From contig JANHCV010000015.1 of assembly GCA_025594325.1 (NCBI GenBank), positions 248,001 through 312,000 on the forward strand: a stretch of 64,000 nt of DNA, read 5' to 3'. Below are positions 2,059-48,552 of the stretch, piece by piece. The first letter of the stretch is position 1. Each line of letters opens with the position of its first letter. Under the pieces are notes generated by a model. It ran no database searches, was not told the DNA's origin, and was given only the letters and a program-made list of their open reading frames with translations. Position numbers and translations under genes: made by a program. The stretch comes from Blastocladiella emersonii ATCC 22665 (lineage: Eukaryota > Fungi > Blastocladiomycota).

Positions 2059-2064
2059 CACCAC

Positions 2065-29514: not shown

Positions 29515-29650
29515 GGAGCCGAGTGGAGCTGCGGGAGAGAGAGCGCGCTTTGGGGCACGCCGCCGATTTTTCACTGGCCGGGCTGGACGCGTTGTCGCCG
29601 TGGTCACCACCTCGCTTCCCTGACCACATAGTGTGCTCTGACCGACCACC

Positions 29651-29678
29651 GTGCCGTATCCCTTAAGGGATACGGCAC
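29651..29678. other. Perfect 28-bp terminal palindrome GTGCCGTATCCCTTAAGGGATACGGCAC
   Basis: Self-complementary, read directly, at the extreme left end. Confidence 0.97.
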
Positions 29679-30128
29679 ACGGCTGCCCTTAGGGACTTCG
29701 CCTCTGGACTCTATCCACCCGGGCTAACCCACGTGATATCTCATTGCTTACCCCGAGTGACTCATAATGAATATAGCGATATCCTCAGGGATTTCGCCAC
29801 CCGGATCGGAGGCCGAAGGCCGAAGCAGGTGGGCGGGAGGGTGGGTGGAAGGGAGGGGCGAGCGGTCCAGGAGTGAGTCCCTGACCTGACCCCTGAGCCC
29901 GTCCCTAACCAACCCCTTGGGCTGACCATTGCTTACCCCGAGCGGTCGGCGGCGGCCGGCGAGCGCAGCGAGACGAAGAGCAGCGCAGCTGCGGCTACCC
30001 ACTGACAGAGTTCCCTGGTCTGGTCCCTGAGCACAGCTGCAAGTCGATCTGTGAGCAGTCCCCGAGCCAGTCCCTGAGCCCGTCCCTGACCACCTGCTGC
30101 AAGCGACTGCTATGAAGCCGTTCACCGT

Positions 30129-30205
30129 AAAAGTTCCACTTTTCGCTCAAAAACAGGTAGGTATATATATACACTGCCCCTTTTTGAGCGAAAAGTGGAA
30201 CTTTT
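30129..30205. promoter_or_regulatory. Stem-loop in the TIR: 25-bp perfect arms and 27-nt loop with TATATATATA (mirror copy at 43283-43359)
   Basis: AAAAGTTCCACTTTTCGCTCAAAAA (30129-30153) pairs with 30181-30205. The function (origin or promoter) is inferred. Confidence 0.6.
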
Positions 30206-30216
30206 CAGAGACAAGA

Positions 30217-30396
30217 GGTCAGGGTACGGGGGTCAGGGCAGGGGAGCGTCTTAGCAGCATCAATGTATTAATCAAAGACAAAGGGTCAGGGTACGGGGGG
30301 TCAGGGCAGGGGAGCGTCTTAGCAGCATCAATGTATTAATCAAAGACAAAGGGTCAGGGTACGGGGGGTCAGGGCAGGGGAGCGTCTTAGCAGGCA
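30217..30396 (+). repeat. 68-bp tandem repeat (~2.6 copies) at the inner edge of the left TIR
   Basis: GGGGAGCGTCTTAGCAG recurs at 30241, 30309 and 30377. Confidence 0.93.
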
Positions 30397-30418
30397 TTGT
30401 GGCAGGTTGTGGACTGTC

Positions 30419-33400
30419 TTAGGGCTCGTTGATGAGCTCGTTGTAGACCTCATCCAGGTCCAGCTCCAGGACAAACGGCGCCGACTTGGCCGGGGCAGTG
30501 GTCCAGGTCTTGTACATGACAAAGTAGTTGATGTCTTCCGTCCACTTCAGGTTAGTGTACTTCTTGCCACGAATTGTGACCTGGCGGTTGTCCTTGTCTG
30601 GCACAGCAAGGCACTTGTTAAAGTAAGTGCTGAGAAGCCTGTTTAGGACTGTTGCTGTGTCACACTTGTAATACCCAAGCTTCTTGAAGTACTTGTGGAT
30701 GTCTGCTTCAAACGTGGCGGGGATGGTGGCCTGGATGTTGAACTCCTCGGACGTGCGGAGGTCCATGCCGTTGTGGTCAAGGAGCTTGTGCAGGACGTGG
30801 GCCTTGTCCTTGGTGTAAAAGTACTGGATACGTTCCATGAAGCGCTCGGCGTTGTCGTCCCAGATGGCCTCCATGTTGTTCTCGCTCAGACCCTTGAACT
30901 TGCGGATGAAGAAGGCCTTGCGGACAGAGAGGCAGATGGTCCAGTCTGGGTCCTCGAGTGTACCCTGGCAGTGGTCGCGCAGGGTCTCCTTGGATGGAAG
31001 CTGGACGTTTGCCCAGTCAAAGGACCAGCCCGATGTCATGACATCCTCAATCTCGGGGTGCGCCTTGTAGTAGTACTCGGGGGAGTCGTCCATGACAATG
31101 TTGGCAACCTTGCAGAAGGCGTCAAAGACCTTGAGGCACGAGGTCACAGCGGCCATCTCGTTCTCGAGATCCGTGTTCTTGACAATGGCCTGGTGAAGTT
31201 TGCCGACCAAGTCCGAGTTAATGACCTGGGACTTGTTCATGTACGCGCCGTGGCAACCATTGCTGATCATGAACACGATCTCGTTGTCAATGGGGTAGCG
31301 CACGCGGTAGATTGCCTGGAAGAAGTCGCGGGCAGGGACCCAGGACTCGTAGCGCGCGTACACCTTGTCAAACTTGTTCTTTGTCGAGAAGTTGACGCCA
31401 ACGGTGATCTTGAGGTTGGCGATGACTATACGGACCGTATCATCGCCCCACACAGAGTCAGGGTCAATGAGTTCCTTGTCCTCGTGGTTGGGGCGGTCGC
31501 CGTGGTAGAGCTTGATCTGCTTGCCAATCTTCCACGTCTCCTTGGCAAAGACCCGCTCAAGGTACTCGCCAAAGGTCTGCACCGACCACTTGGTTGACTT
31601 CTTGCATGGTCGTGGGAGGAAGAGGTAGAGCTTCTTGTTGGCCTTGAGGTCGGCAATGATGTTGCTCTCCATGATGTCTTCGGCGGACTTCTCCTTGTCC
31701 TTGTCGTTGGTGATGAGGCTCATCTTGCGCGGCTCAAACTCCTTGCCAAGCGTGTTCGTGATCACCTTGATCTTACCATGGAGTATGGTCTTGATGTTGT
31801 GCTCAACAGTAAAGGAGCGGAGGACGTCCATGGTCAGGTTTGTGACAAACGCGTCCATGAAGATACCCTTGCTGCCCTTGTGCTCGCACAGCGTCTTGAA
31901 GGCCTTGAGGTTGGCCTCGAGGTTGTTGCAAATGGTGGTTGTGTGCAACTTGGCGTCCTGGAACATCTTGAGGACTGTCTCGGACTCGTCCACCACAACA
32001 ATGTTGTAGGGCTCGGTCAAGTAGTGCAGCGAGCACGGCGAGACAATGAGTCGCTTGTGATCCCCCAGTGTCTTCTTGTCCTTGATGCTGCGGTAGTTGA
32101 CAAAGCCAAGCTTCTGTTCGCGGGCTCGACCCTCGGTGTTGTGGGCCAGGGTGATGCGAGGTGTGATCCAGACCACTCGCGCGTCTGGGTACTTGGCAAT
32201 GTAGTCGCAAACAGCGCCTGTCTTGTTGGAGCCCATGCCCGTGGCCAGCACGTTGAACTTGGCCTCGGTAATGTCGTTGCAGCTCAGGAACTGGTTGGGG
32301 ACGGTCACGTCGGCGGGGACCTGGAGCGACTGCTCAAACTTGATCATGGCCTTGGACTTGAACGCGTCCCAGAACCGCTTGTAGAAGATGGCCTTGATGA
32401 ACTTGTCTGGCACCTGGTAGTCGCAGTTGCTGGCAATCTCGCCCCACCGCTGCTGGTACTTGGCAAAGCGCTGAGCCGAGTTGTCCTGCTGCGACGTCCA
32501 CGCCCAGAACTGTTCAAAGGTGACACCCTTGCGCATGGCCCAGGTCATGATCAGCCAGGTCACGTTGTTGTGGAACGCGTTCTCAGGGCTGACAGGGAGG
32601 TTTTGGAGGATCTCGAGTGGCGTGGCGTCATAGTAGAAGAAGTTGGGGTCGATCTGCACGTCCTTGAACTCGGGGATGTCGAGGTCGTAGTCAAAGCGAC
32701 CCTTGCGGCGCTTGGCCCGCGCTGCCTTGGCCTCGGCAGACACAAACTCGACAAAGGACAGGTCCGAGATCGGCACGCAGTTGGGGTCAAAGTCGTACTG
32801 GATCAGATGCTTGGACAGGCGGTCCTTGTTCCCTGCCTTGAACGTGCCGGGTGTCTTCTTGGGCTTGGACTGGTTGATGCACTTCATGAAGCGGTGCTTG
32901 CTGTACACGCTGGCGTCAAAGCCGAGCTTGACGTGGTCGGGGTGGCTGCAGAACAGCTTCAGGAACGACATGTCCTTGAGCGTGGCCGTGTAGTTGCTGA
33001 GGACAATGTGCCACGACTTTTTGAGGTCCGTCTCGTAGCCGCAGACCTGGAGGTTGGCGCCGGGGAACTGGGCCAGGATGACCTTCTTGATGACGTCCAG
33101 CGTCACGTCCTTGTTGTTGCCCGGGCAGTCAATGTCAAAGTAGACCTTGGACAGGCGCTCGGGGTGGACCATCTCCTGGATGCAGCAGTTCTTGTTGAGG
33201 AGCCCAGCCAGGCCCACCGTCTTGACCTTGGCAAAATAGTGCGCCGCCTTGGGTTCGCCATGGTTGTCGACGCCCTTGTTGATGAGGCGCTTGATGACCG
33301 TCTCGTCGTCTTGCAGCTCGGACAAGAGCTTGCGCTGAGGGCCCATGTCGCTGCCGCCGCCGTCCTTGCCACGGTACCACTGGAGACCAAAGGATTTGCC

Positions 33401-33433
33401 ACCTGCATTGTCGGGGACCGTCTCGCAGACCAT
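30419..33433 (-). CDS. AEP (PrimPol-like) primase + PriCT-like + UL9-like SF2 helicase fusion, 1004 aa
   Basis: AEP motifs YFDID, SWH and FDASVYSKHRFMK. Helicase motifs TGMGSNKT, VVVDESE, KITVGVNF and FFQAIYRVR. Confidence 0.85.
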   Translation of the reverse strand: MVCETVPDNAGGKSFGLQWYRGKDGGGSDMGPQRKLLSELQDDETVIKRLINKGVDNHGEPKAAHYFAKVKTVGLAGLLNKNCCIQEMVHPERLSKVYFDIDCPGNNKDVTLDVIKKVILAQFPGANLQVCGYETDLKKSWHIVLSNYTATLKDMSFLKLFCSHPDHVKLGFDASVYSKHRFMKCINQSKPKKTPGTFKAGNKDRLSKHLIQYDFDPNCVPISDLSFVEFVSAEAKAARAKRRKGRFDYDLDIPEFKDVQIDPNFFYYDATPLEILQNLPVSPENAFHNNVTWLIMTWAMRKGVTFEQFWAWTSQQDNSAQRFAKYQQRWGEIASNCDYQVPDKFIKAIFYKRFWDAFKSKAMIKFEQSLQVPADVTVPNQFLSCNDITEAKFNVLATGMGSNKTGAVCDYIAKYPDARVVWITPRITLAHNTEGRAREQKLGFVNYRSIKDKKTLGDHKRLIVSPCSLHYLTEPYNIVVVDESETVLKMFQDAKLHTTTICNNLEANLKAFKTLCEHKGSKGIFMDAFVTNLTMDVLRSFTVEHNIKTILHGKIKVITNTLGKEFEPRKMSLITNDKDKEKSAEDIMESNIIADLKANKKLYLFLPRPCKKSTKWSVQTFGEYLERVFAKETWKIGKQIKLYHGDRPNHEDKELIDPDSVWGDDTVRIVIANLKITVGVNFSTKNKFDKVYARYESWVPARDFFQAIYRVRYPIDNEIVFMISNGCHGAYMNKSQVINSDLVGKLHQAIVKNTDLENEMAAVTSCLKVFDAFCKVANIVMDDSPEYYYKAHPEIEDVMTSGWSFDWANVQLPSKETLRDHCQGTLEDPDWTICLSVRKAFFIRKFKGLSENNMEAIWDDNAERFMERIQYFYTKDKAHVLHKLLDHNGMDLRTSEEFNIQATIPATFEADIHKYFKKLGYYKCDTATVLNRLLSTYFNKCLAVPDKDNRQVTIRGKKYTNLKWTEDINYFVMYKTWTTAPAKSAPFVLELDLDEVYNELINEP

Positions 33434-33610
33434 GTTGTTATGATGAGGTAACAGAAAAGGTGACAGGGCAGGTGCGTTTAAACGCGCAGGATTTAGCGCT
33501 AATGGCTGTGACCCGGGAGCCCTTGTTGGCATGGCCCATGACTTGCCACTGTCCTGACCCAGGCCCGGCTGCCCTTGTGTGACCTGTCCCTGACCCAGAC
33601 ACGACCTCCC

Positions 33611-33867
33611 CCATGACCCCGACTTGGGAGCCAATCGCGTCTCAGGTCACGATCCTTGAACCGTGACCTGGGCAGCGACTGAGGGCAAAGTCACGGACCC
33701 CCCAGGAGCCCAACTTGGGAGCCAGCAGAGGCCGAGGTCACGATCCTTGAACCGTGACCTGGGCAGCGACTGAGGGCGAAGAACCAGACCTCCACCCCCC
33801 CCCCATGACCCCGACTTGGGAGCCAGCAGGGTCCAAGGTCACGATCCGCTCAAACCGTGACCTGGGC
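33611..33867. repeat. Three direct repeats, each with an inverted motif AGGTCACG-N10/12-CGTGACCT, in the divergent intergenic region
   Basis: Copies at 33644-33669, 33735-33760 and 33836-33863. CATGACCCCGACTTGGGAGCCA is also repeated. Confidence 0.85.
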
Positions 33868-33991
33868 CCTCCCACGGTCCATGACTTGCCACCACCCTGA
33901 CCCTGACCCAGGCCCAGCTACCCAGAAAAAAGAACGTTGCGTTCAAACGCACTTGAGCCCATGGAGCCTTTTTGTTGACAGTCAGTAAACC

Positions 33992-35134
33992 ATGTCGCTC
34001 GAGTCTCTTGCCTCCCAGGTCGCCGTTGCCCTCGCTCAGCATGTTGCCGCAGACGTGGTGCAGCAAGTCATGGACAAGCTCCAGCCCGTGTTTGGGTCAA
34101 TCGACAAGCGCTTCAAGGACTTGGACGCGCGACTCAAGGCCATCGAGTCACACGACCCAGATCACGGCGCTGATCAGCAAGTCACTCCCGTGGAAGTCGA
34201 CACCCCCAAGGTCAAGTTTGCTGAGCTGACTGAGGATGCCATCGAGGCATGTGTCAACGCGCCTGTGGTGGACAAGAACGGGGAGCAGGCCACGCTGAGC
34301 GACACGGACAAGACCAAGACAACTCGCGTGCTCCTTGCATTTGCCAAGTCGGGCATGGATATCCACAACGTTGATGCCGTGTCCAAGGCCGTGGCCACGT
34401 ACCGCGCGACCAAGGGGTCCAAGAACGTCCAGGGACTGCAGGTTGAGACGCTCAAGGCCCTTGCCAAGTACTGTACGTGGAATGGGTGGACCGAGCTTGG
34501 GGCCAAGTACACAGAGGCCAAGAAGCGGGACGCTGACGCCAGCGTGGACGTGCGCAAGGAGCTTGAGTCGGGCGCCCTTCCAAGCCGTGCCGTTCTGCTG
34601 GCTGCTGCGGTTGCTGCCAAAAAGTGGGACAAGCTCGAGTGCACGGGCACCATGCGCTACCTGCGTCTCTACCTCCAAGTCGTGTGCGCGACCCACAGCG
34701 ACCTCGCGTTCCTGACTACAGCCCCAAGCGACAAGTACCCGTCCTACGACCCTGAGACCAAGACGCTGGCCGGGCCAATCTGTGTCAAGACCGAGGGTCG
34801 TGGCTACGAGTTCTCGCATGTCATCGCCGACCCCAACGTGGCAGCCGCCCTGGAGCGGGTCATGGCCAAGCGCAAGGAAGACGGCTACGAGCTGCTGTTC
34901 TTTGACTACACAATCAAGGACCTCGACGACGCCAAGGTGAACACGGCCATTCGCAAGGACTGGTCCAAGACGATTGGCCTTGCTACCAAGAAGCTCAAGT
35001 TTGACGGGTGCGGCGTGCAGCAGATCCGTCGGATTGCTGCGAGCGAGAACGCCGAGGCTTACGCGGCCATTGCCCAGCGCGCCAATGAGATGGGTCACAG
35101 CGTGCCTGTCGCCGTCGCCCACTACATGGTGTAA
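33992..35134 (+). CDS. Divergent tyrosine recombinase-like protein, 380 aa
   Basis: C-terminal QQIRR...ANEMGHSVPVAVAHY gives R...H-x8-Y, and VKTEGRG supplies the Lys. The box I Arg position reads LYLQVVCATHSDL. Confidence 0.75.
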   Translation: MSLESLASQVAVALAQHVAADVVQQVMDKLQPVFGSIDKRFKDLDARLKAIESHDPDHGADQQVTPVEVDTPKVKFAELTEDAIEACVNAPVVDKNGEQATLSDTDKTKTTRVLLAFAKSGMDIHNVDAVSKAVATYRATKGSKNVQGLQVETLKALAKYCTWNGWTELGAKYTEAKKRDADASVDVRKELESGALPSRAVLLAAAVAAKKWDKLECTGTMRYLRLYLQVVCATHSDLAFLTTAPSDKYPSYDPETKTLAGPICVKTEGRGYEFSHVIADPNVAAALERVMAKRKEDGYELLFFDYTIKDLDDAKVNTAIRKDWSKTIGLATKKLKFDGCGVQQIRRIAASENAEAYAAIAQRANEMGHSVPVAVAHYMV

Positions 35135-35154
35135 CTTTTGTCTGTTGTATTGTA

Positions 35155-36267
35155 ATGTACCCACACGAAGAACCTTTGACTGCTGAACAGACCGAGTACC
35201 TGAAAGACTTGTACTACAAACGCGGCCATGTTGGGGTCGGGATCCGCTGTCTCTTTGACATTGTTGACCGCGAGCATACAGGGAAGCACATTTACCGCGC
35301 CCAGCTCGAGCGGTGGCTCAACGACCAGTCCGTGTGGCAGCAGTACAAGCGCGCACCTCAGAAGCGCCAAGACATTCGAAGCATCAACTCAACAAGTCCT
35401 GGCCGCAACTTTCAGCTCGACCTCATTGACATGGGCGAAAACGGTACGTACAAGGGCTTCCGTTACATTCTTACGTGTGTCGACCTGGCGAGCCGCCGCG
35501 TCTACCTCCAACCCATCAAGACCAAGGACAAGACGCGGGAAGCATGGTCCAGCGTGGTCGCCAAGCACAGCCTTGCACCTGCCACGATCCAGACGGACAA
35601 TGGGACCGAGTTCTTTGGCATAGAGGCCGGGACCGAGGCCAAGCACATCAAGGGCAAGGCAGGAGTGCCATACGGTCAAGGTGTTGTTGAGCGTATGAAC
35701 GGGACCATCCGCCGGATGCTCACACCGTGGCTGTCCATTGCCGGCAACAACGACTGGCCCAAGCACCTCAAGACCATTGAATCTGTGATCAACAGCAGCA
35801 AGTCGAGGGCCACAGGCAGGGCGCCCAACGAGTTCCATGACATGCCCCGCGAAACGGCCAAGGAAGAGCTCAAGGCAATCCGAGCTGCCAAGGGCAAGCC
35901 AGAAGGCGACCCTCTGAGCGCGTTGTTGAAGGTAGGGACCCAGGTCCGAGTCCGCGAGCCGTACAAGACTGCCATGGAGGCCAAGGGGAAGCCGGTCTGG
36001 TCGACAACTGTGAGCCAGGTCCAGGTCGTGCGCAAGGGGTTGGGCGTAAGCAATCCGAGCTACAAGGTCCAAGGCCTCAAGGGCTTCTACCCTCGAAGCG
36101 ACGTCCAGCCAGTCACAGCGACCCAGGACCCGCCAACAAGGCAGCGCGTAGGTCCAGGTCTTCCAAGGCTCCCTGTTGCGCGCACCCCAGTCACGCCAAG
36201 GGAGCCCTCGACCCGGGTCAGGCGCGTCCCAGTCCGAGTCCAAGAAAAGTGGGACCGCGGGCTTTAG
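35155..36267 (+). CDS. rve-type DDE integrase (Maverick/PLV c-integrase-like), 370 aa
   Basis: QLDLID, QTDNGTEF and GVVERMNGTIR give an intact D-D-E triad. C-terminal LKVGTQVRV domain. Confidence 0.93.
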   Translation: MYPHEEPLTAEQTEYLKDLYYKRGHVGVGIRCLFDIVDREHTGKHIYRAQLERWLNDQSVWQQYKRAPQKRQDIRSINSTSPGRNFQLDLIDMGENGTYKGFRYILTCVDLASRRVYLQPIKTKDKTREAWSSVVAKHSLAPATIQTDNGTEFFGIEAGTEAKHIKGKAGVPYGQGVVERMNGTIRRMLTPWLSIAGNNDWPKHLKTIESVINSSKSRATGRAPNEFHDMPRETAKEELKAIRAAKGKPEGDPLSALLKVGTQVRVREPYKTAMEAKGKPVWSTTVSQVQVVRKGLGVSNPSYKVQGLKGFYPRSDVQPVTATQDPPTRQRVGPGLPRLPVARTPVTPREPSTRVRRVPVRVQEKWDRGL

Positions 36268-37790
36268 AGCAGGGTCCAGTGGCTTTGAATGATGACCTGG
36301 CAGTCGTTGGCAACTGCGACCAACGGGATCCAGATGAAAGAGTAGCTCTTGGCCGCGTCAAGGTACTCAATGCTCGAGAACTGAAGGAACTGGACGTTGC
36401 CTTCAGCGCGGCACCCGGTGACAAGCGACACTGCAATCATGTCTGTCATATTGTACAGCGCAAAGTTCACAGTGTGGGCTCCAGGGAGCGCGCCGTTTGC
36501 GTAGTAGCCCTTTGCATGGACGAGGTAGTAGCCACTGACAGGGGGTTTGACGCATCCATTGATCACAGACGTGAACGCGCCCGCCGTGGACTGGAACGCA
36601 AAGGTGGCTGGGCCTGTCGATGCTGTGCCGCCAATGATCTTGCCGCCCGTGGTCACTCCGTTTGTAGAGCGGTGCTCGGCCTGAGCGACGTACCGGGTCG
36701 TGCCAGACCGCGAGTCAATGTACGCCTTGTTTGCCGCATCGGTGCCTGCCACTGGAGCGAGGTCAAGAGTGAGCTGCCCTGTGAAGCGACCAGTGCCATT
36801 GACGCGGAGCCTTTCTGTGCCAAGCGTCGCCAAGCCCACGACCACGTTGCTGCCACCTGCCACGAGGGAGACCCCGCCTGTGGTCGCAGACGCAATCTCA
36901 ATGTTACCCGCCGCTGTGCATGCCAGGTTGCTTCGCAGTACGCCTGCCTGCTTAAAGTCGACGTACGTCAATGTATTGGCAGCCGAGTCAAAGACAAGGT
37001 TTGCGCTTGTGGCATTCCGGACCAGGACGTTGGGCACAGTCAGTTGCTTGCCAACTCCAAGACCACCAGCAATGGTGACTGCTCCAGTGCTTGATGTCAA
37101 ACTGTCCGTCGTATTCGCAAAGGCAAAGGCAGCGCCAAGCCCAAGGGTGGACTGGGGGAGCGTGCCAGCGACCGAGGCTGCGCTCACCGCCGTGACCTTG
37201 GCCGAGACGTCGGGGAGTCGTGCCAGGTCAATGGTCCCTGCAAGCTTGGCCGAGTCAATGCCAGATGCCAGCTTGGCGTTGGTCAGGGTCCCGTCTGCAA
37301 TGCGGGCAGGGTCGAGGATCCCAGTGAGCTTGACCGCCGACACGTCCGCAACCTTGGCGTCTGTGACCGCGCCTGTTGCCAGGTGGGCTGTTCCAATGGA
37401 CCCAACGTTGAGCTTGGCCCCATCAATGCCAGTTGCCAGCTTGGCGTTGGTCACGGCCGCGTCTGCCAGGACCAGGGAGCCGACCGTGCCTGCTGCCAGC
37501 TTGGACCCGTCGATGCCAGCTGCCACCTTGGCGTTGGATATGGCACCGTCTGCCAGGGCTCCCGTCCCAATAGTCCCTGCAACGAGCTTGGACCCAGACA
37601 CGGACGCGACCTTGGCATCTGTGACTGCCAGGTCAACGAGAGCCGCCGTGCCGACCGTGCCTGCCACGAGCTTGGACCCGGACACGGACGCGACCTTGGC
37701 ATCAGTCACTGAGCCGTCTGCCAGGACCGAGGTCCCGACTGTGCCTGCCACGAGCTTGGACCCAGACACGGACGCAACCTTGGCATCTGG
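36264..37790 (-). pseudogene. 5'-truncated viral fibre/adhesin-like gene (~500 codons remaining)
   Basis: 27-29-aa repeats DAKVASVSGSKLVAGTVG..LADG.VT, followed by STGAVTIAGGLGVGK, TDAANKAYID and a C1q-like beta head. No in-frame ATG upstream of the repeats in this segment. Confidence 0.7.
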
Positions 37791-39317
37791 ACGCCCGAGA
37801 GCTATGCCAACGACTTTGGCCGCAAACGAGGTGACTCGCTGTTCTACCTCAAGCACCAGGACGGCGTCACTGGGTACGAGGTCAAGGACCTCCAGGAGCA
37901 CGTCCAAGACACGCTTAAAGCGTGGGAAGAGCACCAGGCAACGGGCAAGGTCACTTGAGTCCCAGTCGCTCCACCAGCGGCAAGCCCCAGACCAGAGGCC
38001 CCCGAGTCGGCCACGGACAGCAACAGGGGCAGCAGCGAAGAGGAGCGCGACGAGCTGGCAGAAGAGATCTCGCGAGCCCTGGATGTCATTGACAAGGACG
38101 CTGTACCGGACCACTTGCTCCCCGTGCCCGTCCGGCCAGTCATGCCCGAGCAGTACCCGGTCGAGGCCAGCGACTATGTTGGTCAAGACATTGACAAGTA
38201 CAGCGCCATGATCCCCGGCCAGTACCTGATCCAGAATGACAATGACGGCGGCAACGACCCACCCCCAAGGCTTGACGACGGCACCCGCAACCTCGTGGTC
38301 ATGCCACCAAGCTACGGCCCGGACGTGGCACAGCGGCAAGGCGTGTACAACGAGGGTCACGTCCACCCGGCCATGGACGAGGCACGCACGATCGAGGGCT
38401 CCAAGGACTTGCAGGTCTACAACCCCGAGCGGGCGCTGACAACCACGGACGACATGGAGGTCGACGTTGTCCAGAACTTTCAACAGTTTAACCAGTTCGT
38501 GTACAACAGCTACACGCAGCAGAACACGCAGAACGTCGACATGCGGCAGTTCATCACCCAGTACGAGAACAACTACTACGAGCAGAACGTGGACATGCGG
38601 CAGCAGATCCTGGTCCAGTACAACAATGACCCGAACGTCATGGCCGCGCTTGAGCTCATTGCCTCGCAGTTTGCCGGGTCCCAGGTCATGCAGTACCAGG
38701 CGTACCAGGCGCTCATCGAGCAGTCGGCGGCCGCTCAGGGACTGGCCATGGACGCATTTGCCAACCTCGCGTCCGGGATCGTGGACACGCTCCGAGCCGA
38801 ACGCAACGACTTTGTCCGCCAGATTGACGCTGGCAACCGCGCGCTTGTGTCTGAGATTGCCACGGGCATGTCCTCTGCGCTCAGCAACCAGCAGGTGCTC
38901 ATGAACCAGCTCGCAAGCGGCGTCCAGGGCGCGATCCAAGGGCAGACCCAGAGCAACGAGGCCATGACCAAGACGCTCCAAGACCTTGGGTCCAAGCTGG
39001 ACACGATCCCTGCACCCCAAGTCATTGTCCAGCCTGCCGACACAAGCGGCCTTGAGGCCATGATCAGGGAGCTGGCCGCGCAAAACAATTCTGGCAGTAG
39101 TTCTAAGAAGACCGACATGCTCCTCGAACAGATCCTCAAGCAACTGGGCTACAAGAAGCCGACCGACGCGAAGCTGTTCACAGACAAGCGGGCAGCGGGT
39201 AGCGGGCTGACAGCGCCCAAGATCCAGCGTCACCAGAAGATCCCTGAGCGGCCCGTCAAGCAGGTCCGTGAGACCCCAAGGCGCAGCGGCATTGTGCTTG
39301 ACCTCGGCTGGGACTGA
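37782..39317 (+). pseudogene. 5'-truncated Q/N-rich coiled-coil gene with in-frame TGA at 37956-37958; an ATG at 38142 could give 391 aa
   Basis: A coding-like frame (GIWTPESYANDFGRKRGDSLFYLK...KVT*VPVAPP...EEERDELAEEISRALD) is continuous with ORF 38115-39317. There is no ATG before the TGA. Confidence 0.6.
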
Positions 39318-39343
39318 CGCCCTTTTTTGTTGGCAGTCTTTAA

Positions 39344-40141
39344 ATGTACGACATTGTTGCCATTGACAACGGCTTTACGCGCAACGACGACGGCGAGCCG
39401 CTGCCGATCCCCACGCACCCGTTCACCATGAACGTCATTGGCGCCAAGGGTCAGGGCAAGTCGACGCTGATCGCAAACATGGTCTGCTTCCCGCACTTTT
39501 ACAAGGGCCAGTTCGACAACATCTGGGTCTTTAACCCGACGTTCCACGCCGACGACAAGTACAAGTACATTGCCAGTCAACCGATCCTGCGACCGCCCAA
39601 GAAGGAGCGCAACGTGCTGGACCCCCAGGAGCGCGACCCGGACCGGCTCAAGATCAAGCCAAGCTGCATCGTCACGGACCCCAAGCAGTTCATCCCGACC
39701 CTGCTCAAGATGCGCCAGGACCTGACCAAGACATTCGAAGAGTCTGGCAAGAAGGCGCTCCAGGACCAGCTGCTGATCATCGACGACGTGCTTGGGCTCA
39801 AGCTGCTGAGCCACCAAACGCTGACCAACTTTCTGTGCAACTCGCGGCACTTGAAGATCAGCTGCATCATTGGCGTCCAGCGGTGGTGTGCCCTGCCCAA
39901 GACCCTGCGTATCAACTGCAGCTACAGCGTGGTCTACCCAATCTATGACAAGACCGAGGTCCAGACGCTGCACAAGGAGATTGGGTCGCAGTTCGACCTC
40001 AAGGAGTTTGAGGCCATCATTGAACAGCTCTTTGACACGCGTACTGGCAACACGAAGCGACGCTTCCTGGGCGTCAACAACCAGAACCCGCCCAAGTACC
40101 GGCTCGTAGACAGCTTCAGCGAGTGGATCGTGAAGCAGTAG
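39344..40141 (+). CDS. A32-like (FtsK-HerA) genome-packaging ATPase, 265 aa
   Basis: Walker A GAKGQGKS, Walker B LLIIDD, and SRHLKIS....Q....LPKTLRIN. Confidence 0.93.
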   Translation: MYDIVAIDNGFTRNDDGEPLPIPTHPFTMNVIGAKGQGKSTLIANMVCFPHFYKGQFDNIWVFNPTFHADDKYKYIASQPILRPPKKERNVLDPQERDPDRLKIKPSCIVTDPKQFIPTLLKMRQDLTKTFEESGKKALQDQLLIIDDVLGLKLLSHQTLTNFLCNSRHLKISCIIGVQRWCALPKTLRINCSYSVVYPIYDKTEVQTLHKEIGSQFDLKEFEAIIEQLFDTRTGNTKRRFLGVNNQNPPKYRLVDSFSEWIVKQ

Positions 40142-40181
40142 ACTCTTGACTTTTTTTTGTTGCCGAGTCCTAAACTAAACC

Positions 40182-41402
40182 ATGTCCAGTACCAACGCCC
40201 AGTTCTTGCAGGTCCTGTCCAAGACTCTCCCTCCCGAGATGTCGTTCAACCTGCCCAAGGAGTCCGTCTATGCCGAGCGCCAGACCGTCCAGTTCACGGC
40301 TCAGGGCGGCCCCGAGTTTGCTCCTGGCAACAGCATCAGCGTCCTGCTCCCGCCGCGCGACGACATGATGGACACGCACTGTACTTTCCTGCAGTTCTCG
40401 GCCAAGACCACGGACGCCAACGTTGCTTTCTGCGATGGTATCTTCAGCGTCATTGACCGTGTCCGCATCTACAGCGCGTCTGGTGCCCTACTCGAAGAGC
40501 TCCCGTACTACAACCTGCGTCAGCGCATCGAGGCCGACGTGACGGTCCCCCAGTACCTCAAGGACTCGTGTCTTGGTGTGGCACAGGGCTACTTTGCGTC
40601 CGGCGCTGACAAGTTCGCCGTCTCGTCCGGGCTGCACCGGTACATGCTGCCCATCAAATCCGCCCTGCTGGCAAACCAGAAGCACCTCCCAATGAAGTAC
40701 ACGGGCGGCATCCGCGTCGAGTTCACCCTTGCACCTGGCAGCGACGCCTGCGTGGTCAAGAACAATGCAATCCCGGGCTACACAGTCAAGGACGTCTGCA
40801 TTGTCTCGGACCTGATCAAGCTCAACGACCAGCAGATCGCGGTCATGGACGCGGCCTTCAAGAAGCAGGGCCTCAAGCTCTTTGGCACGACCTACAACCA
40901 CCACTTCCTGAACTACTCGGTGCCCAACTCGACGCTCAACATCTCAGACCGCTCGGCCTCACAGAAAGACATCCTGCTGTCGTTCCGCGACAATGCCGTG
41001 CTCAACGACAATGCCAAGGACTCGTTCCTTCGTGCCAAGACCATTACATCGTACCAGTTCAGCGTGGCCGGCCGACTCTTCCCTCAGCGACCCATCCGCT
41101 GTGACGACTACGCGTCCGAGGCGTTCGTTGAGCTGACCAATGCCTTCCATGGCCACGTCATTGGCGCTGGCCTCACAGTCGACAAGTTCAACGCGCTGGC
41201 CGAGGGTACCTTTGTTGTCGGCCGTGACCTCAAGTCGAGTCGCACCGTGGTCAGCGGCGACAAGTCTTGCAAGAGCCAGGCCGTGGACATGCAGGTGATC
41301 CTGACTTCAAGCGTGGCCCCAAACCAGCGCGTGGACGCCTTCATTGGCATCGACGTGGTCTACAAGTTCCTGCCAACCAGCGAGATCAACATCTACAAGT
41401 AA
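40182..41402 (+). CDS. Major capsid protein, probably double jelly-roll, 406 aa
   Basis: Size, alternating beta-strand pattern, YQFSVAGRLFPQRPI and FVVGRDL..S...SG as in PLV-type MCPs, and position next to the ATPase. Not confirmed by structure search. Confidence 0.78.
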   Translation: MSSTNAQFLQVLSKTLPPEMSFNLPKESVYAERQTVQFTAQGGPEFAPGNSISVLLPPRDDMMDTHCTFLQFSAKTTDANVAFCDGIFSVIDRVRIYSASGALLEELPYYNLRQRIEADVTVPQYLKDSCLGVAQGYFASGADKFAVSSGLHRYMLPIKSALLANQKHLPMKYTGGIRVEFTLAPGSDACVVKNNAIPGYTVKDVCIVSDLIKLNDQQIAVMDAAFKKQGLKLFGTTYNHHFLNYSVPNSTLNISDRSASQKDILLSFRDNAVLNDNAKDSFLRAKTITSYQFSVAGRLFPQRPIRCDDYASEAFVELTNAFHGHVIGAGLTVDKFNALAEGTFVVGRDLKSSRTVVSGDKSCKSQAVDMQVILTSSVAPNQRVDAFIGIDVVYKFLPTSEINIYK

Positions 41403-41443
41403 CGGCCCTGTCCTTTCTTTTCTTGCATAGAGTTAAACCCGCC

Positions 41444-41710
41444 ATGATCTTCCGTAACCTCTGGACCAACTTTAGCAATGTGCTCGGCCAGGTCGGGTCC
41501 TTTGTCAACAAACACATGCCGACTGTCCTCAAAGGCGTCAAGACCGTGTCCAAGTTCTTTGAGCGGTCGCACAACCCCGCCGTGAGCTCCATTGCGCAGA
41601 TGGTGACCAAGGGCGCGGACCTTGCCCAAGACATTCACACCTGGTACAACCAACCGACGAGCGAGATCTTTGAGGCAGACGCTGACGACACGGGGACAGC
41701 TGTACAATAA
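41444..41710 (+). CDS. 88-aa protein with N-terminal amphipathic helices
   Basis: ATG in the element's typical T-rich context. Sequence LWTNFSNVLGQVGSFVNKHMPTVLKGVKTVSKFF with an acidic tail. Confidence 0.7.
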   Translation: MIFRNLWTNFSNVLGQVGSFVNKHMPTVLKGVKTVSKFFERSHNPAVSSIAQMVTKGADLAQDIHTWYNQPTSEIFEADADDTGTAVQ

Positions 41711-41728
41711 ATTGTTGTCTTTGTTTAA

Positions 41729-42460
41729 ATGTCCGAGTACAAGACGCTGACCATCTGCAGCCGCGACCTCAAGAACGGCATCCTGTACCTACCACGACCC
41801 CTGTCCGTGCGCGGCGTCAAGGTCAACTCGGCGTACCTCTGCAACAGCTGGCACAAGGCCAACAAAGTGTACCTGACCCAGAGCCGTGGCGCGCTGACGT
41901 TCCCGGGCACCATCACCGTCCCTGATGGCAACTACACGGTCGAGACGTTCACGGCCACGCTCAAGAGCCTGCTCAACAACGCGCCCTCAGCGTACCTCTG
42001 GCAGGGCACATGGGACGTCCAGGTTGACTCGACTACCCAGAAGATGCGCCTGGCCAACGACACGGTTGACTTTACAATTGGAACAGGGACGGCGTCGCTG
42101 AACGTCCACATGGGCTTTGTTGGAGCGTATGGCTACAGCAAGGTCCAGTACGCGTCGGCGCTGGTCAACATCTCGCCCATCAACCTGCTTCACGTCTACT
42201 CGCGCAACCTTGGCACCCGGCTTGCGGACAACATGTACAGCGCGTACCCACAAGACAACGGCGTACTTTGTAGCATCCACGTCATGCAACCCTTTGGCAG
42301 CTGGTTCGAGCATCGACCACACATGGGTGACTACTTTCGCTTTGACGCGCAGGGACAGGCCCAGCAGATTGACTGTATTGACATTGACGTGGTAGATGAG
42401 AACCTGCGCTCTGTCGACTTTCTCGGCCAACCCTTCTACGTCGAGCTCGCGTTCATCTGA
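41729..42460 (+). CDS. Minor capsid (penton-like) protein, 243 aa
   Basis: ITVPDGNY and C-terminal IDIDVVDENLRSVDFLG, typical of Maverick/PLV single jelly-roll pentons. Confidence 0.75.
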   Translation: MSEYKTLTICSRDLKNGILYLPRPLSVRGVKVNSAYLCNSWHKANKVYLTQSRGALTFPGTITVPDGNYTVETFTATLKSLLNNAPSAYLWQGTWDVQVDSTTQKMRLANDTVDFTIGTGTASLNVHMGFVGAYGYSKVQYASALVNISPINLLHVYSRNLGTRLADNMYSAYPQDNGVLCSIHVMQPFGSWFEHRPHMGDYFRFDAQGQAQQIDCIDIDVVDENLRSVDFLGQPFYVELAFI

Positions 42461-42491
42461 CGTTGACTTTAATTGTTGTTGTACTGTAAAC

Positions 42492-42593
42492 ATGATCCTC
42501 GAGACGCTCCTTGTTGCCACCAACGCCCTGATCCTTGTAGCCAACCTGGCCATTGTCGGGTACACAAGCAAAGTATTCCGCGCCGTAGAGTAA
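42492..42593 (+). CDS. 33-aa hydrophobic single-pass peptide
   Basis: MILETLLVATNALILVANLAIVGY, preceded by TTGTTG...TAAAC as in the other element genes. Confidence 0.5.
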   Translation: MILETLLVATNALILVANLAIVGYTSKVFRAVE

Positions 42594-42601
42594 GCAACGA
42601 C

Positions 42602-42799
42602 ATGTGCTTTAAATTCTTTCTGCGAAGGCATAGTAAGACACAGGACAATGAATACTGGCTCTACTGCATCAACGCCCCACGCACCTTCCACGAGCATCCC
42701 TTGGACTGGCCGTCCAGGCCCCCAGTCGACAGCCAACTACACGGCCATCCGCGACGTGGCCCTGCCAGGTGCCAAGGTTGTGTACACTGTCTGCTTTGA
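42602..42799 (+). CDS. 65-aa hypothetical protein with C-terminal CQGCVHC
   Basis: ATG 8 nt after the previous stop, in the same compact packing. Confidence 0.35.
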   Translation: MCFKFFLRRHSKTQDNEYWLYCINAPRTFHEHPLDWPSRPPVDSQLHGHPRRGPARCQGCVHCLL

Positions 42800-42853
42800 A
42801 TAGATCCTTCAAGTTAACTTGGTTAGCTACCTTGAAGCCTTCACTGGTCGCTC

Positions 42854-43006
42854 TCAGACTACCCGGCGGTATGTGTACTTGTGCCTGCAGCATGGGTACA
42901 CAACTTGGACCCACAGCAGCTCATTGTCATGGACCCAGCTGGGAGCATCATAGTGATCGCATGGCGGCTTGGGCAGGGGGACGATCTCTTTGATACAGCC
43001 TCGCAT
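42854..43006 (-). CDS. 50-aa Cys/His-containing hypothetical protein
   Basis: The ATG is preceded by the element motif TTTGTTG...GTAACT. Confidence 0.35.
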   Translation of the reverse strand: MRGCIKEIVPLPKPPCDHYDAPSWVHDNELLWVQVVYPCCRHKYTYRRVV

Positions 43007-43074
43007 AGTTACAGTAGTCCAACAAAGTTTAAATTGACAAACGCATTCAACGCACTTGGCATGACGTAGCAACG

Positions 43075-43206
43075 GGCACCCCCGACCCTCCTTGACCCGG
43101 CACCCCCGACCTGGCACCCCTGACCTGGCACCCCCGACCCTCCTTGACCCGGCACCCCCGACCTGGCACCCCCGACCCTCCTTGACCCGGCACCCCCGAC
43201 CTGGCA
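43075..43206 (+). repeat. Composite tandem repeat of 24-bp and 14-bp units (24-14-14-24-14-24-14)
   Basis: GGCACCCCCGACCCTCCTTGACCC and GGCACCCCCGACCT, read directly. Confidence 0.92.
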
Positions 43207-43230
43207 TGCCCCTTCCTGCTAAGACGCTGC

Positions 43231-43837
43231 CTGCTAAGACGCTCCCCTGCCCTGACCCCCGTACCCTGACCTCTTGTCTCTGAAAAGTTCCACTTTTCGC
43301 TCAAAAAGGGGCAGTGTATATATATACCTACCTGTTTTTGAGCGAAAAGTGGAACTTTTACGGTGAACGGCTTCATAGCAGTCGCTTGCAGCAGGTGGTC
43401 AGGGACGGGCTCAGGGACTGGCTCGGGGACTGCTCACAGATCGACTTGCAGCTGTGCTCAGGGACCAGACCAGGGAACTCTGTCAGTGGGTAGCCGCAGC
43501 TGCGCTGCTCTTCGTCTCGCTGCGCTCGCCGGCCGCCGCCGACCGCTCGGGGTAAGCAATGGTCAGCCCAAGGGGTTGGTTAGGGACGGGCTCAGGGGTC
43601 AGGTCAGGGACTCACTCCTGGACCGCTCGCCCCTCCCTTCCACCCACCCTCCCGCCCACCTGCTTCGGCCTTCGGCCTCCGATCCGGGTGGCGAAATCCC
43701 TGAGGATATCGCTATATTCATTATGAGTCACTCGGGGTAAGCAATGAGATATCACGTGGGTTAGCCCGGGTGGATAGAGTCCAGAGGCAAAGTCCCTAAG
43801 GGCAGCCGTGTGCCGTATCCCTTAAGGGATACGGCAC
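43231..43837 (-). repeat. Right terminal inverted repeat (607 bp) ending in the palindrome (43810-43837; extends to 32 bp, 43808-43839)
   Basis: Reverse complement of 29651-30257. Confidence 0.95.
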
Positions 43838-44032
43838 ACCGATTGGCTCCATAACTTGGCGCATTCTACTTTTTGGTCAAGCCACTGTGCGCTGAACGGC
43901 CAGGGGTGAGAAGGGTTTGAGACTTCTGCGGCCGCGCTGGAACGGCCGCGCCTCTCGCATCTGCCCACGCACAGGCCAGGCAATTAACAAATAATATTCA
44001 GTTTATCCATCATCAACCGTGGTCGTGCCGTG

Positions 44033-46875: not shown

Positions 46876-48552
46876 TCATGCGCACGCATTGCTCATCAGT
46901 GTTGGCGCCGCGTTGCGAGCGGAGATGGACTGCACAAAACGGTTCTTGTCGGCCTGATCGAGCATGACCGGAATCAAACAGGTCGCCAAGGCATCGAAAT
47001 TAGTTCCGTAAAAGTCGAAGGGAGAAAATTCATCCGAGTCCTCGTCCAAGAGTTGTAGCAGCCGGTTTGCAAAGAAGATGCGAGCCTCAATCCCGCCAAT
47101 TCCGAGGGCCTCGAGATTCATGCCAAAGCGATGATCGGCCAACATGAGATAATGTTCAGCAACGAGGTGAACAGTTGCTTCTTTACCGCAACGGCGAAGC
47201 GCGAGCGAAACGATCCGAGCAAATTCATCTGGGCGTTTTGAACGCGCTGGGAGCTCTTCCAGCATTATGCCAAGTACTTGACCCGCTTCATTGCCTTGTT
47301 GGTCGAGAAGCAGGTCATCAAGCTCGACGCCTTTAAGATCGCCAATGATGGTCTGGGGAACAATCAGGGACCAGTACTCGAACTGCCTCAGCCATGGCCA
47401 CGCGCGACCCATCGCAATCGCAAGCCCAGACGCGACGGCGTAGCCACGGTCGACCCACCGGCACAGAATATTGCAGATGAGAGCTCGTTGTGTCCCGCTT
47501 GCCAGGTCAGCGAGGCGAACACGATCATAAGTCTCGAACAGACGCATGACAATAGCGGGATCGGTACGATCCGCGTAAACGAACGTGAAAACCGCTGCGC
47601 AATGGGGTTTCATGCTTGCAGGCATTGTGACTTGCTGCGGCTCCCAGCCATGGTCAAAGAGCCAGTCGAGCAAGCAGCAAACCGCCTCGAGCGGATAGAC
47701 GTTAACACACTTAAGGAACGTTCCGTACACGCGGTGTGCCGCGAGGAAATCAATGATGCGAGAAGGCTGTGGGTGATGCCGCACGACGATTTTGAGTGCC
47801 TCAAGATTTGCATGAGACGCGGCCAACATAGCAACGAGCTCCAGGAAGCTCGCGCTAAACGGCTTCGCACTCTTATTAGCGTCGCAGTCGAGGGCATACC
47901 AGAGGTGAGAGAGCGCCATTTGAAGCCATGGGGCATGGTCCGGTAGTAGCTTGACGAATTCACGCGAAGGCAAGGTGGCTTCGAGCGAGAGGATATGATA
48001 CGAGCGGACGAAGCTCGAGAGCGCGGAATCAAGACTAGTCGCGTCTTTGATGGCCTCAAAGTACAGCGCAAGGATCACGGTGTCGATAATACGCTTGGTG
48101 CCGCCACTCGAACCGCTTGAAGCACCATGGCTCGCGGGTGTGGCATTGAGATCAAGAGGCACGCGCTGCTGGTAAGCGGAGAGTCGCGGACACGCCCTCA
48201 AAGCGGCGTTGAACATGTATACGCCGAGCTGGGGGCAAGGTATGTCATGAACAGTCGAGGTGCAGCTGAGCGCGAGCGATGCCGTTGCGCACCGTGCGAG
48301 AGCGCTGGGCCAAATAGGTATGCTGCCCTCGCAAAGGTCATCATACGGAACTGCGTTGAGAAGTCTGTTTGACACGCCTGAGCCGGCGCGATTGAACCAC
48401 GAGTACAGGAGGCGGTGGCGGTTCGCCGCGAGGACGCGGGACGCGCGCACGACTCGCACGCGAGGGGTGCAGAGCAATGCGATGTGGTCGACCAGCTCGT
48501 TGGGAAGCGATGATAAATCCAGCGGTGGGTCCATTTGCTTCGTTTGATTCAT
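46876..48552 (-). pseudogene. C-terminally truncated family paralogue, 558 aa
   Basis: MNQTKQMDPPLDLSSLPNELVDHIALL. It ends shortly after ALATCLIPV and lacks the last ~150 aa. Confidence 0.7.

Follow-up and report, generated by a model that had tools for sequence, protein, structure and literature searches.

The locus raises the question of whether a repeat-bounded unit carrying capsid genes in the chromosome of Blastocladiella emersonii ATCC 22665 is the genome of a Polinton-like virus (PLV), and whether that genome has open core genes and an unusual gene set, as a preliminary description had claimed. PLVs are understood here in the sense of Yutin et al. 2015, with the TVS and PgVV groups. 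The majority of the PLVs described so far were found in algae or metagenomes, whereas the Blastocladiella element is fungal. The analysis covered a stretch of 64,000 nucleotides, referred to below as the window. With a probability of about 0.9, the region is an integrated PLV genome belonging to a lineage that lives in blastocladiomycete fungi; the genome carries roughly 17 or more such copies.

The limits of the element were defined from its repeats. The inverted repeat of 607 nt reported earlier is real (29651-30257 and 43231-43837, with exactly one mismatch), but its outermost base on each side belongs to the target-site duplication (TSD). The element proper therefore occupies positions 29652-43836 (14,185 bp), with terminal inverted repeats (TIRs) of 606 nt in each arm that differ by one mismatch, and has 5'-TG...CA-3' ends (Table 1). 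The contig also holds a sister copy (L009; 15,334 bp, with 801-nt TIRs free of mismatches) with its own 5-bp TSD, GAAAT, and since this differs from the one observed here, the 5-bp duplication is not due to chance. The terminal palindrome has two matches in the whole window, both at the element ends, against a chance expectation of 0, and it occurs at the ends of every sister copy; in two copies with a variant form (L004 and L010) the changes are symmetric across both halves. It is exceedingly improbable that the unit is an assembly artefact or contaminant DNA. Nothing was found in favour of this apart from a GC content below that of the host (58.8% in the element against 67.3% in the window outside its lower-GC parts), whereas the element sits with its TSD inside a 1.07-Mb contig and is flanked by paralogous host genes, its copies are spread over at least nine contigs, and the same type of element is present in Allomyces.

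Table 1. Features of the element and its borders, with positions in the window.
Feature	Position	Strand	Basis or remark
Target-site duplication CACCG, 5 bp, left copy	29647..29651	.	identical bases flank both ends directly
Left TIR, 606 nt, begins TG	29652..30257	.	1 mismatch to right arm
Terminal palindrome, 26 bp, perfect; 10-bp arms, 6-bp CTTAAG centre	29652..29677	.	
Tandem repeat, 68 bp x 2.8 copies	30205..30393	.	spans inner edge of left TIR
Replication protein, 1004 aa from first ATG	30419..33433	-	AEP primase motifs N-terminal; UL9-like SF2 helicase central
Tandem repeats, 91 bp	33608..33867	.	between divergent replication and 380-aa genes
Putative tyrosine recombinase, 380-aa ORF	33992..35134	+	motifs only
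rve-family DDE integrase, 370 aa	35155..36267	+	Pfam rve, NCBIfam IS481, PHROG transposases
Remnants of two divergently transcribed genes, joint boundary is the break	36264..39317	.	compared with intact L004, L009, L010
A32-like genome-packaging ATPase, 265 aa	39344..40141	+	Pfam Pox_A32 4.8e-12
Major capsid protein (MCP), double jelly-roll, 406 aa	40182..41402	+	fold match to viral capsids
ORF of 88 aa between the genes for MCP and putative penton	41444..41710	+	no Pfam match
Putative penton (minor capsid) protein, 243 aa	41729..42460	+	synteny and homology
Variable non-coding stretch	42461..43230	.	short low-complexity ORFs only, no Pfam matches
Right TIR, 606 nt, ends in 26-bp palindrome (43811-43836) and CA	43231..43836	.	
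Target-site duplication CACCG, 5 bp, right copy	43837..43841	.	identical bases flank both ends directly

Two different integration enzymes had been attributed to the element, and one of them, the rve integrase, was confirmed. The protein scores under the Pfam rve cut-off (2.9e-6, 27.9 bits against 32.6 bits); it matches the NCBIfam IS481 transposase at 2e-18, and its PHROG matches are transposases. Residues D89, D148 and E179 are invariant in five relatives; together with the TG...CA ends, and with the TSD of 5 bp seen in two copies (4-6 bp being expected), this D,D,E triad agrees with an rve/DDE integrase. Tyrosine recombinases, the class proposed for the second enzyme, carry catalytic R-K-H-R-H/W-Y residues in a conserved fold. 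In the 380-aa ORF, the R..K..R..H..Y motif order recurs in the paralogues and in the Allomyces orthologue identified by its position (hhalign E 0.002), while the copy studied here departs from 6 of the 6 other full-length paralogues at one putative catalytic residue. Profiles, PDB and fold gave the assignment no support: no Pfam, PHROG or PDB match was obtained, and a Foldseek search with an unreliable AF2 model (pLDDT 46.5) returned nothing below E 0.4, with Cre and TelA appearing only at E ~1.5. Together with the 26-bp terminal palindrome, this recombinase-like protein may make up a second system, for site-specific recombination or for the processing of ends.

The capsid and packaging genes were previously described as a full morphogenesis module. 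The ATPase, the MCP and the fibre profile were upheld; the fibre gene, in contrast, is truncated, and the penton assignment is based on synteny and homology. The ATPase reaches 46 bits against the Pfam Pox_A32 cut-off of 22.8 bits, its gene lies directly upstream of the MCP gene, and its exact sequence is present in NCBI nr for B. emersonii. The double jelly-roll (DJR) fold of the MCP was established by a confident AlphaFold2 model (pLDDT 91.5, pTM 0.88), for which Foldseek returned PBCV-1 Vp54 (E 1.9e-18, probability 1.0, TM 0.65) followed by the iridovirus, EhV, faustovirus and D13 proteins. The comparison with BFVD agreed with this result (top match 6.8e-23, TM 0.78); capsids of the NCLDV/PLV type ranked highest there, and those of virophages followed only much lower, at E 3e-12 to 7e-12. 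A phmmer search identified 458 relatives of the MCP. The slot of the 88-aa ORF also holds a small ORF in two metagenome relatives (L002 and L003). The 243-aa protein, which had no PDB sequence match, is 36-38% identical to the post-MCP gene of two PLV-like metagenome contigs, and is considered a putative penton on these sequence comparisons.

A primase-SF2 helicase had been proposed as the replication protein; the helicase part of this proposal stood, and the primase part is putative. The protein matches NCBIfam CyRepA1 at 3e-20, its homologues match Pfam Herpes_ori_bp (PF02399) above the cut-off, and a profile built from 28 sequences retrieved the herpesvirus origin-binding protein in PDB at 5.5e-26. 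The profile match extends over the Walker A and DExx helicase core, which marks the helicase as UL9-like SF2. The putative N-terminal primase part gave no profile or PDB match and was assigned by its motifs: F99-D100-x-D102, H142 and D173..Y177, which do not vary among 28 diverse homologues, are candidates for AEP motifs I (DxD), II (H) and III (D). The usual replication type of PLVs is instead a primase-SF3, and a non-homologous primase-SF3 helicase gene occupies the replication-gene slot in L009 and L010, whereas the copy studied here has the UL9-like SF2 helicase fused to the putative AEP domain.

PLVs in general are 14-40 kb long and have a DJR MCP, a penton, an A32 ATPase, TIRs and a helicase-primase; typical members have neither protein-primed PolB (pPolB) nor protease, and their helicase-primase occurs with or without a tyrosine recombinase (PMC7805220). 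The element resembles them in its DJR MCP, the A32/FtsK-type ATPase adjoining the MCP, the TIRs, a length within about 14-40 kb, and the lack of pPolB and protease. This lack was correctly noted before: neither pPolB nor an adenain-like protease was matched by any ORF, the remaining coding space has no room for them, and both are absent from 6 of the 6 copies examined and from the Allomyces relative. The gene set had been called unusual, which it is not, since the same absences together with a helicase-primase are described as typical of PLVs (PMC7805220). An endogenous PLV in a true fungus is nevertheless supported by the B. emersonii host and by the MCP, ATPase, integrase, fibre and replication protein. 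Polintons/Mavericks likewise have an rve integrase, TIRs, a TSD, a DJR MCP, a penton and an A32 ATPase, and those of these features found here would fit a canonical Polinton that had lost pPolB and protease by deletion. This origin is very unlikely: Polintons/Mavericks have the protein-primed PolB and adenain-like protease that the Blastocladiella element is without, its coding space is fully accounted for, complete primase-helicase genes of two kinds are present instead, and both copies tested have a 5-bp TSD.

Comparison with intact sister copies further revealed that this copy is damaged. The core ORFs had been taken as open, but two genes have been cut short by a single deletion, and an added stop lies in one of the pair. 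The fibre gene, on the - strand and 632 aa long where intact, was identified by Pfam Phage_Tail_Tip at 1.6e-9, above the cut-off, and by PHROG tail-fibre families; it is missing its 5' end. The second gene (+ strand; 571 aa when intact), which has no assigned function, has lost its 5' end and contains one premature stop. As two genes are broken, this copy cannot be complete; because its TIRs differ at one position in 606, it is a recent insertion, yet a defective one.

Sister copies also bear on the state of the family. It is possible, although unlikely, that these elements are fossils or behave purely as transposons, with disused capsid genes, spread only by integrase transposition or segmental duplication, and no particle stage today. 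The two broken genes of this copy are in keeping with it, as are an internal stop in the integrase frame of another copy (L005), truncated MCP and ATPase models at NCBI, and the lack of a close free-virus contig in the pattern scans. Against it, every gene compared in L009, L010 and L004 aligns full-length as a single tblastn block, the checked 571-aa and fibre frames of these three copies have no internal stops, and the TIRs are perfect in L009 and over at least 1014 nt in L010. The dN/dS values between copies were 0.08-0.25 for the MCP, ATPase and integrase, even between close copies, which indicates at the sequence level that purifying selection acted as the copies diverged and that their genes were then in use. 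A separate TSD flanks each copy examined, and the copies are thus not segmental duplicates.

A short upstream motif, found at gene starts only, appears to be common to every gene of the element, including the 88-aa ORF, and lies close to the ATG. It takes the form T-run...AGTAA, includes CAGT, and appears promoter-like for all genes; within the morphogenesis block, neighbouring genes are separated by 18-41 nt. Characteristic of virophages are a cysteine protease, a virophage-type MCP and a dependence on giant viruses; those of the Mavirus type integrate into chromosomes with short TSDs and have long TIRs, an rve integrase and a compact promoter before each gene. The motif near each ATG and the short gaps represent a layout typical of virophages, and the rve integrase and TIRs are likewise shared with Mavirus. 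The element could thus be conceived as a virophage-like satellite, latent in the chromosome and expressed through viral transcription machinery only on infection by a giant virus (Mycodnaviridae). Giant viruses do infect zoosporic fungi, Mycodnaviridae being known from Allomyces, a genus related to Blastocladiella, and some of their contigs have PLV-like integrases (PMC13533422). We consider a satellite of this kind improbable, given that the element encodes its own primase-helicase, its MCP is closer to NCLDV/PLV-type than to virophage capsids, and the CAGT in the motif could equally be a host Pol II initiator. The combination of a virophage-type MCP and a cysteine protease was not found, the Mycodnaviridae paper does not mention Blastocladiella (PMC13533422), and the literature searched contained nothing joining Blastocladiella with a polinton or virophage.

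The integrated PLV is real, and it belongs to a multi-copy family with relatives already noted in Allomyces. A paper of 2021 described PLV genes in Allomyces macrogynus and a PLV integrated in Spizellomyces (Bellas & Sommaruga, PMC7805220); for Allomyces, it covers only MCP, ATPase and DNA helicase genes, with no architecture, ends or copy families, and places the MCPs among PLVs. The Allomyces protein AMAG_17996 is 32% identical to the MCP described here. An Allomyces macrogynus locus (L011), from the same host phylum, has the same gene order, with identities of 59% for the MCP, 60% for the ATPase, 49% for the rve integrase, 44% for the AEP-UL9-like replication protein, 35% for the 571-aa gene and 30% for the fibre, and a recombinase-like ORF in the same slot. 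It differs in having an additional Cys-rich ORF of 247 aa and in showing no long TIR within the stretch examined. The novelty suggested for the lineage could not be maintained in view of this shared architecture and the fungal PLV genes published in 2021, while the Blastocladiella family itself has no description in the literature searched.

The Spizellomyces punctatus PLV group likewise has a fungal (chytrid) host and is integrated in large contigs. Fungal PLVs with an rve or tyrosine recombinase have TIRs and 5-7-bp TSDs, and about half of the Spizellomyces punctatus group has a chitinase (PMC7805220), which the Blastocladiella element lacks. The Spizellomyces homologue of the replication protein shows 30% identity, and one locus (L008) holds a replication gene and an integrase fragment with no capsid genes within 10 kb. 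Syntenic relatives occur in metagenome contigs. Pattern scans of IMG/VR and JGI metagenomes detected no relatives, which leaves two Logan/ENA contigs, with an MCP identity of 33-38%, as the only known trace of a free-living counterpart.

For the integrated PLV, a life cycle can be proposed in which the linear genome would be inserted by its own DDE integrase, acting on the TG...CA ends with a 5-bp staggered cut. The primase-helicase would open an origin, probably in one of the tandem-repeat arrays, and recruit host polymerases. MCP trimers would build an icosahedral shell whose vertices are occupied by the 243-aa protein; the ATPase would fill this shell with the DNA, and the fibre would serve for attachment. 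A more far-reaching proposal, which we hold only tentatively and rather doubt, is that the Blastocladiella family represents a dsDNA virus that is active today and forms particles in a true fungus amenable to culture, in which whole replication modules (AEP-SF2 versus primase-SF3) are swapped between co-resident genomes and, besides the DDE integrase, a recombinase-like protein acting on the 26-bp palindromes is used; an interaction with the newly described giant viruses of zoosporic fungi, either virophage-like or defensive, is conceivable as well. Rhizidiomyces virus, which has isometric particles and a dsDNA genome and was reported to be latent in a zoosporic water mould, is alike by description only, its host being a hyphochytrid (stramenopile) and not a fungus.

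The non-coding parts of the element are rich in repeats. The 91-bp tandem repeats vary in copy number among the element copies, and their region is a candidate origin or promoter region. The variable stretch beyond the putative penton gene shows no conservation with the diverged copy L005 and contains 14/24/38-nt repeats at 43075-43215, and a 32-nt hairpin is located inside the left TIR at 30129-30205.

The preliminary description of an endogenous Polinton-like virus (PLV) in a fungus was real and correctly read. A direct count of the inverted repeat at 29651–30257 and 43231–43837 gave 607 nt with one mismatch, as first proposed. A 5-bp direct repeat, CACCG, was identified at 29647–29651 and 43837–43841 and includes the outermost base of each arm. 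As these bases are part of the repeat, the element proper extends from 29652 to 43836 (14,185 bp), with terminal inverted repeats (TIRs) of 606 nt and 5'-TG...CA-3' ends. The contig also holds the sister copy L009 (15,334 bp), in which the two 801-nt TIRs match perfectly and the TG...CA termini are the same, while its flanking 5-bp repeat is different (GAAAT). Two independent insertions with a 5-bp duplication and TG...CA ends present the signature of a DDE (retroviral-type) integrase. A weak 3-bp target-site duplication (TSD), ACC, seen at the first inspection of the flanks, was rejected, as L009 places the start of the element at TG.

The earlier reading of the genome as fungal was also right, since the capsid protein and the ATPase of the window were exact NCBI matches to proteins of B. 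emersonii ATCC 22665. The contig, JANHCV010000015.1, is 1,068,026 bp long, and the element lies between two of seven tandem paralogous host genes, with ordinary fungal genes around the region. Contamination or misassembly as the source of the element is very unlikely. The GC content of the element is 58.8%, compared to 67.3% for the window excluding its lower-GC parts, and the insertion point precedes the likely start of one flanking paralogue by ∼150 bp. The seven paralogues are uncharacterised, share 25–41% identity, encode 560–780 aa and occupy the lower-GC parts of the window; none of them had a Pfam match. No tRNA or Rfam family was found within the element. The features are listed in the table.

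Features of the window, the sister copies (L004, L009, L010) and the Allomyces macrogynus locus (L011)
Feature	Location	Strand	Basis or annotation
Host paralogues	1828–4176, 4884–6917	+	paralogy
Host paralogues	24434–26488, 27382–29649, 44332–46056, 46876–48552, 48744–51056	-	paralogy
26-bp palindrome	window 29652–29677, 43811–43836; L004:13872–13897; L010:5917–5942		
Replication protein, 1004 aa	30419–33433	-	CyRepA1; Herpes_ori_bp in homologues
380-aa ORF, putative tyrosine recombinase	33992–35134	+	motif order
rve/DDE integrase	35155–36267	+	rve slightly under cut-off; IS481; PHROG
A32-like ATPase	39344–40141	+	Pox_A32, exceeds curated cut-off
Major capsid protein (MCP)	40182–41402	+	AlphaFold2 model and Foldseek
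Putative penton, 243 aa	41729–42460	+	homology to post-MCP gene
Fibre		-	Phage_Tail_Tip over cut-off; several phage tail-fibre families (PHROG)
DUF5906/SF3 replication gene	L009:6836–9277; L010:7048–9390	-	domain matches
A. macrogynus element	L011:233–12172 (GG745338.1)		annotated gene: replication protein only
416-aa recombinase-like ORF	L011:7460–8710	-	

The MCP was not recognised by sequence searches of Pfam, PHROG, NCBIfam and the PDB. An exhaustive phmmer search yielded 458 relatives, and an alignment of 58 of these gave a confident AlphaFold2 model (pLDDT 91.5, pTM 0.88). Using Foldseek, the model matched the double jelly-roll capsid protein of PBCV-1 (E 1.9e-18, probability 1.0), followed by the double jelly-roll capsids of iridovirus, EhV, faustovirus and vaccinia D13, and the best match among the BFVD viral models reached 6.8e-23 with a TM of 0.78. 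The MCP thus has the double jelly-roll fold, the absence of which had been named beforehand as counting against the viral reading. Pattern scans of IMG/VR and the JGI metagenomes for relatives of the MCP were empty. The A32-like ATPase and the fibre, both claimed from the sequence, were borne out by profile matches above cut-off, and the fibre protein contains a run of ∼28-residue repeats. The putative penton showed 36–38% identity to the gene directly after the MCP in two PLV-like metagenome contigs, and returned no match from the PDB sequence search, Pfam, PHROG or NCBIfam. In the NCBI models (window 41444–42460, L001), an 88-aa ORF is spliced to the penton ORF via a predicted intron, giving 299–303 aa; the replication gene is also given an intron, and the integrase and the 380-aa ORF are without annotation in the window copy.

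The helicase core of the replication protein matched the plasmid replication family CyRepA1 (3e-20, NCBIfam), and Pfam Herpes_ori_bp was found in its homologues. A profile built from 28 sequences matched the herpesvirus origin-binding protein in the PDB (5.5e-26); other PDB sequence searches with the replication protein were without result. Judged by these profiles, the helicase is assigned to SF2, UL9 type, which agrees with the helicase part of the primase-SF2 helicase originally proposed. The primase part stands at the level of motifs: the N-terminal domain had no profile match, and the archaeo-eukaryotic primase motifs DxD, H and D..Y were invariant in 28 of 28 homologues, which makes it a putative primase. 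Neither a protein-primed polymerase nor a protease was matched by any ORF of the element, which has no coding space left over, so the reported absence of both genes was upheld. This absence is the norm among PLVs, and the gene set can therefore not be called unusual. The combination of a helicase-primase and a tyrosine recombinase has been described as “more typical of the PLV” (Bellas and Sommaruga, 2021; PMC7805220).

Two different integration enzymes had been proposed, one of which is confirmed. The rve integrase matched the IS481 transposase (2e-18, NCBIfam) and PHROG transposases, and its D, D and E residues were invariant in relatives from Allomyces and two metagenome contigs. The second, the 380-aa ORF, presented the motif order of tyrosine recombinases, which was kept in the B. 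emersonii paralogues, and a 416-aa ORF that takes this position in the Allomyces element could be aligned on these motifs (hhalign E 0.002, probability 14%). Its identity as a tyrosine recombinase is unconfirmed. Searches of Pfam, PHROG, NCBIfam and PDB sequences gave no match to this ORF even at E 10, and its AlphaFold model, from an alignment of eight paralogues, was unreliable (pLDDT 46.5); the fold search performed on that model returned no significant match, with Cre and protelomerase TelA in the noise at E ∼1.5. A tblastn search of the recombinase-like proteins against phage genomes gave nothing useful. The window ORF further deviates at one putative catalytic residue from all six other full-length paralogues.

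In the apparently intact sister copies L004, L009 and L010, a 632-aa fibre gene and a 571-aa gene are divergently transcribed. Relative to these copies, a single deletion of ∼1 kb has taken the 5' ends of both genes in the window, and the 571-aa gene, the protein of which had no match in Pfam, PHROG or NCBIfam, additionally carries one premature stop. The earlier statement that the core ORFs are open holds for six genes (replication protein, 380-aa ORF, integrase, ATPase, MCP and penton), all of full length, but not for the fibre and 571-aa genes. The 88-aa ORF is also open. The window copy is an incomplete genome. In the diverged copy L005, the integrase frame (L005:3972–5084) contains an internal stop, which indicates that this copy is decaying too.

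The extent of the family was gauged from the NCBI proteins of B. emersonii. The ATPase was represented by at least 15 distinct sequences of 90% identity or more (17 accessions), spread over nine or more contigs; several MCP clusters at 83–97% identity and 14 replication-protein sequences were also present. The copies differ by 3–20% in their DNA, yet the TIRs within a copy are identical or nearly so (one mismatch in 606 nt, and none in 801 nt or in at least 1014 nt). Each insertion thus stems from a genome that keeps its ends identical, and each is young. The dN/dS values among copies were 0.08–0.25 for the MCP, ATPase and integrase, which indicates that the divergence was built up under purifying selection.

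The morphogenesis proteins of L009 and L010 were mostly 94–99% identical to those of the window, with the exception of the L009 MCP (85%; its ATPase was at 98%). Between L009 and the window, dS was 0.51 for the MCP, compared to 0.13 for the adjacent ATPase and 0.17 for the integrase. The higher divergence of the L009 MCP points to recombination between lineages and a mosaic family. A homologue of the UL9-like replication protein was not found in L009 or L010; their replication slot is occupied by a 780–813-aa protein with a DUF5906, an SF3 helicase and a P4-type primase C-terminal domain. An SF3-type replication protein was also present in the metagenome relative L003. Two non-homologous replication modules thus circulate in one family within one genome, through a swap of the whole module.

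Homologues of the window replication protein were identified in Allomyces arbusculus, A. javanicus and A. macrogynus (46–50% identity), in Spizellomyces punctatus (30%), in Borealophlyctis, Boothiomyces, Rhizophlyctis and Thoreauomyces (29–32%), and in many metagenome contigs. The A. macrogynus element has the gene order of the window, with identities of 59% (MCP), 60% (ATPase), 49% (integrase) and 44% (replication protein), and differs by an extra 247-aa Cys-rich ORF (L011:8773–9516, minus strand). A second, more distant A. macrogynus MCP, AMAG_17996, likewise belongs to the relatives identified. Two Logan/ENA contigs have the ATPase-MCP-small ORF-penton block and the integrase in common with the window (33–45% identity). 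In S. punctatus (L008:10001–17564, KQ257452.1), the replication-protein homologue adjoins a 1046-aa DNA methylase gene and an integrase fragment, and no capsid genes were found within 10 kb of it; this locus may be a decayed or different element.

These relatives limit the novelty first inferred for the lineage, which had been noticed before in Allomyces; the element is not of a new kind. An integrated PLV of S. punctatus defines a PLV group, the MCP, ATPase and DNA helicase genes of A. macrogynus were noticed as “implying these were integrated viruses”, and integrated elements were found to carry TSDs of 5–7 bp (Bellas and Sommaruga, 2021; PMC7805220). Giant-virus contigs of zoosporic fungi also bear PLV-like integrases (PMC13533422). 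No paper found in our literature search paired Blastocladiella with Polintons or virophages, and the B. emersonii genome paper mentions neither viral nor transposable elements. Judged against the searchable literature, four features are new, namely a large and young family in B. emersonii whose ends and TSDs are defined, the presence of two alternative modules for replication, the palindrome conserved at the termini and the shared motif upstream of genes. Very few DNA viruses of true fungi are known, and what is known of fungal PLVs comes only from short notes on genome mining. In B. emersonii, a laboratory model whose genome is contiguous, a young multi-copy family would offer a well-defined sequence resource for how PLVs integrate, recombine and are expressed in fungi: it has perfect TIRs and TSDs, some sister copies seem intact, and its two replication modules are interchangeable. 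It could also reveal any relation to the Mycodnaviridae, giant viruses discovered recently in Allomyces, the sister genus. The family further accounts for dozens of ‘hypothetical protein’ models in the B. emersonii assembly and in Allomyces.

Every copy, including the diverged L005 (80%), ends in a perfect 26-bp palindrome with 10-bp arms and a CTTAAG centre. L004 and L010 have a variant in which the changes are symmetric across both halves. This retention, together with the symmetric variant, argues for a function that would depend on symmetry, such as dimer binding or a hairpin. Telomere resolution (hairpin ends) was considered and fits poorly, as the whole palindrome is retained at both integrated ends. 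A pattern scan of IMG/VR for the palindrome was empty.

A T-run...AGTAA(A/C) motif precedes five of the seven gene starts at a distance of 10–45 nt (33433 on the minus strand, 33992, 39344, 40182 and 41444) and is absent before the remaining 374 of the element's 379 ATGs, a statistic inflated by the choice of the pattern after inspection. The motif was also present before genes of L005 and the Allomyces element, and resembles a compact promoter or initiator common to the genes; it could be either a viral promoter or an initiator of the host. Two tandem repeats, with units of 91 bp and 68 bp, adjoin the replication gene and the inner TIR edge and are candidate origin elements. The 91-bp unit that precedes the replication gene is repeated more often in L004 (1429–2123) than in the window (33608–33867).
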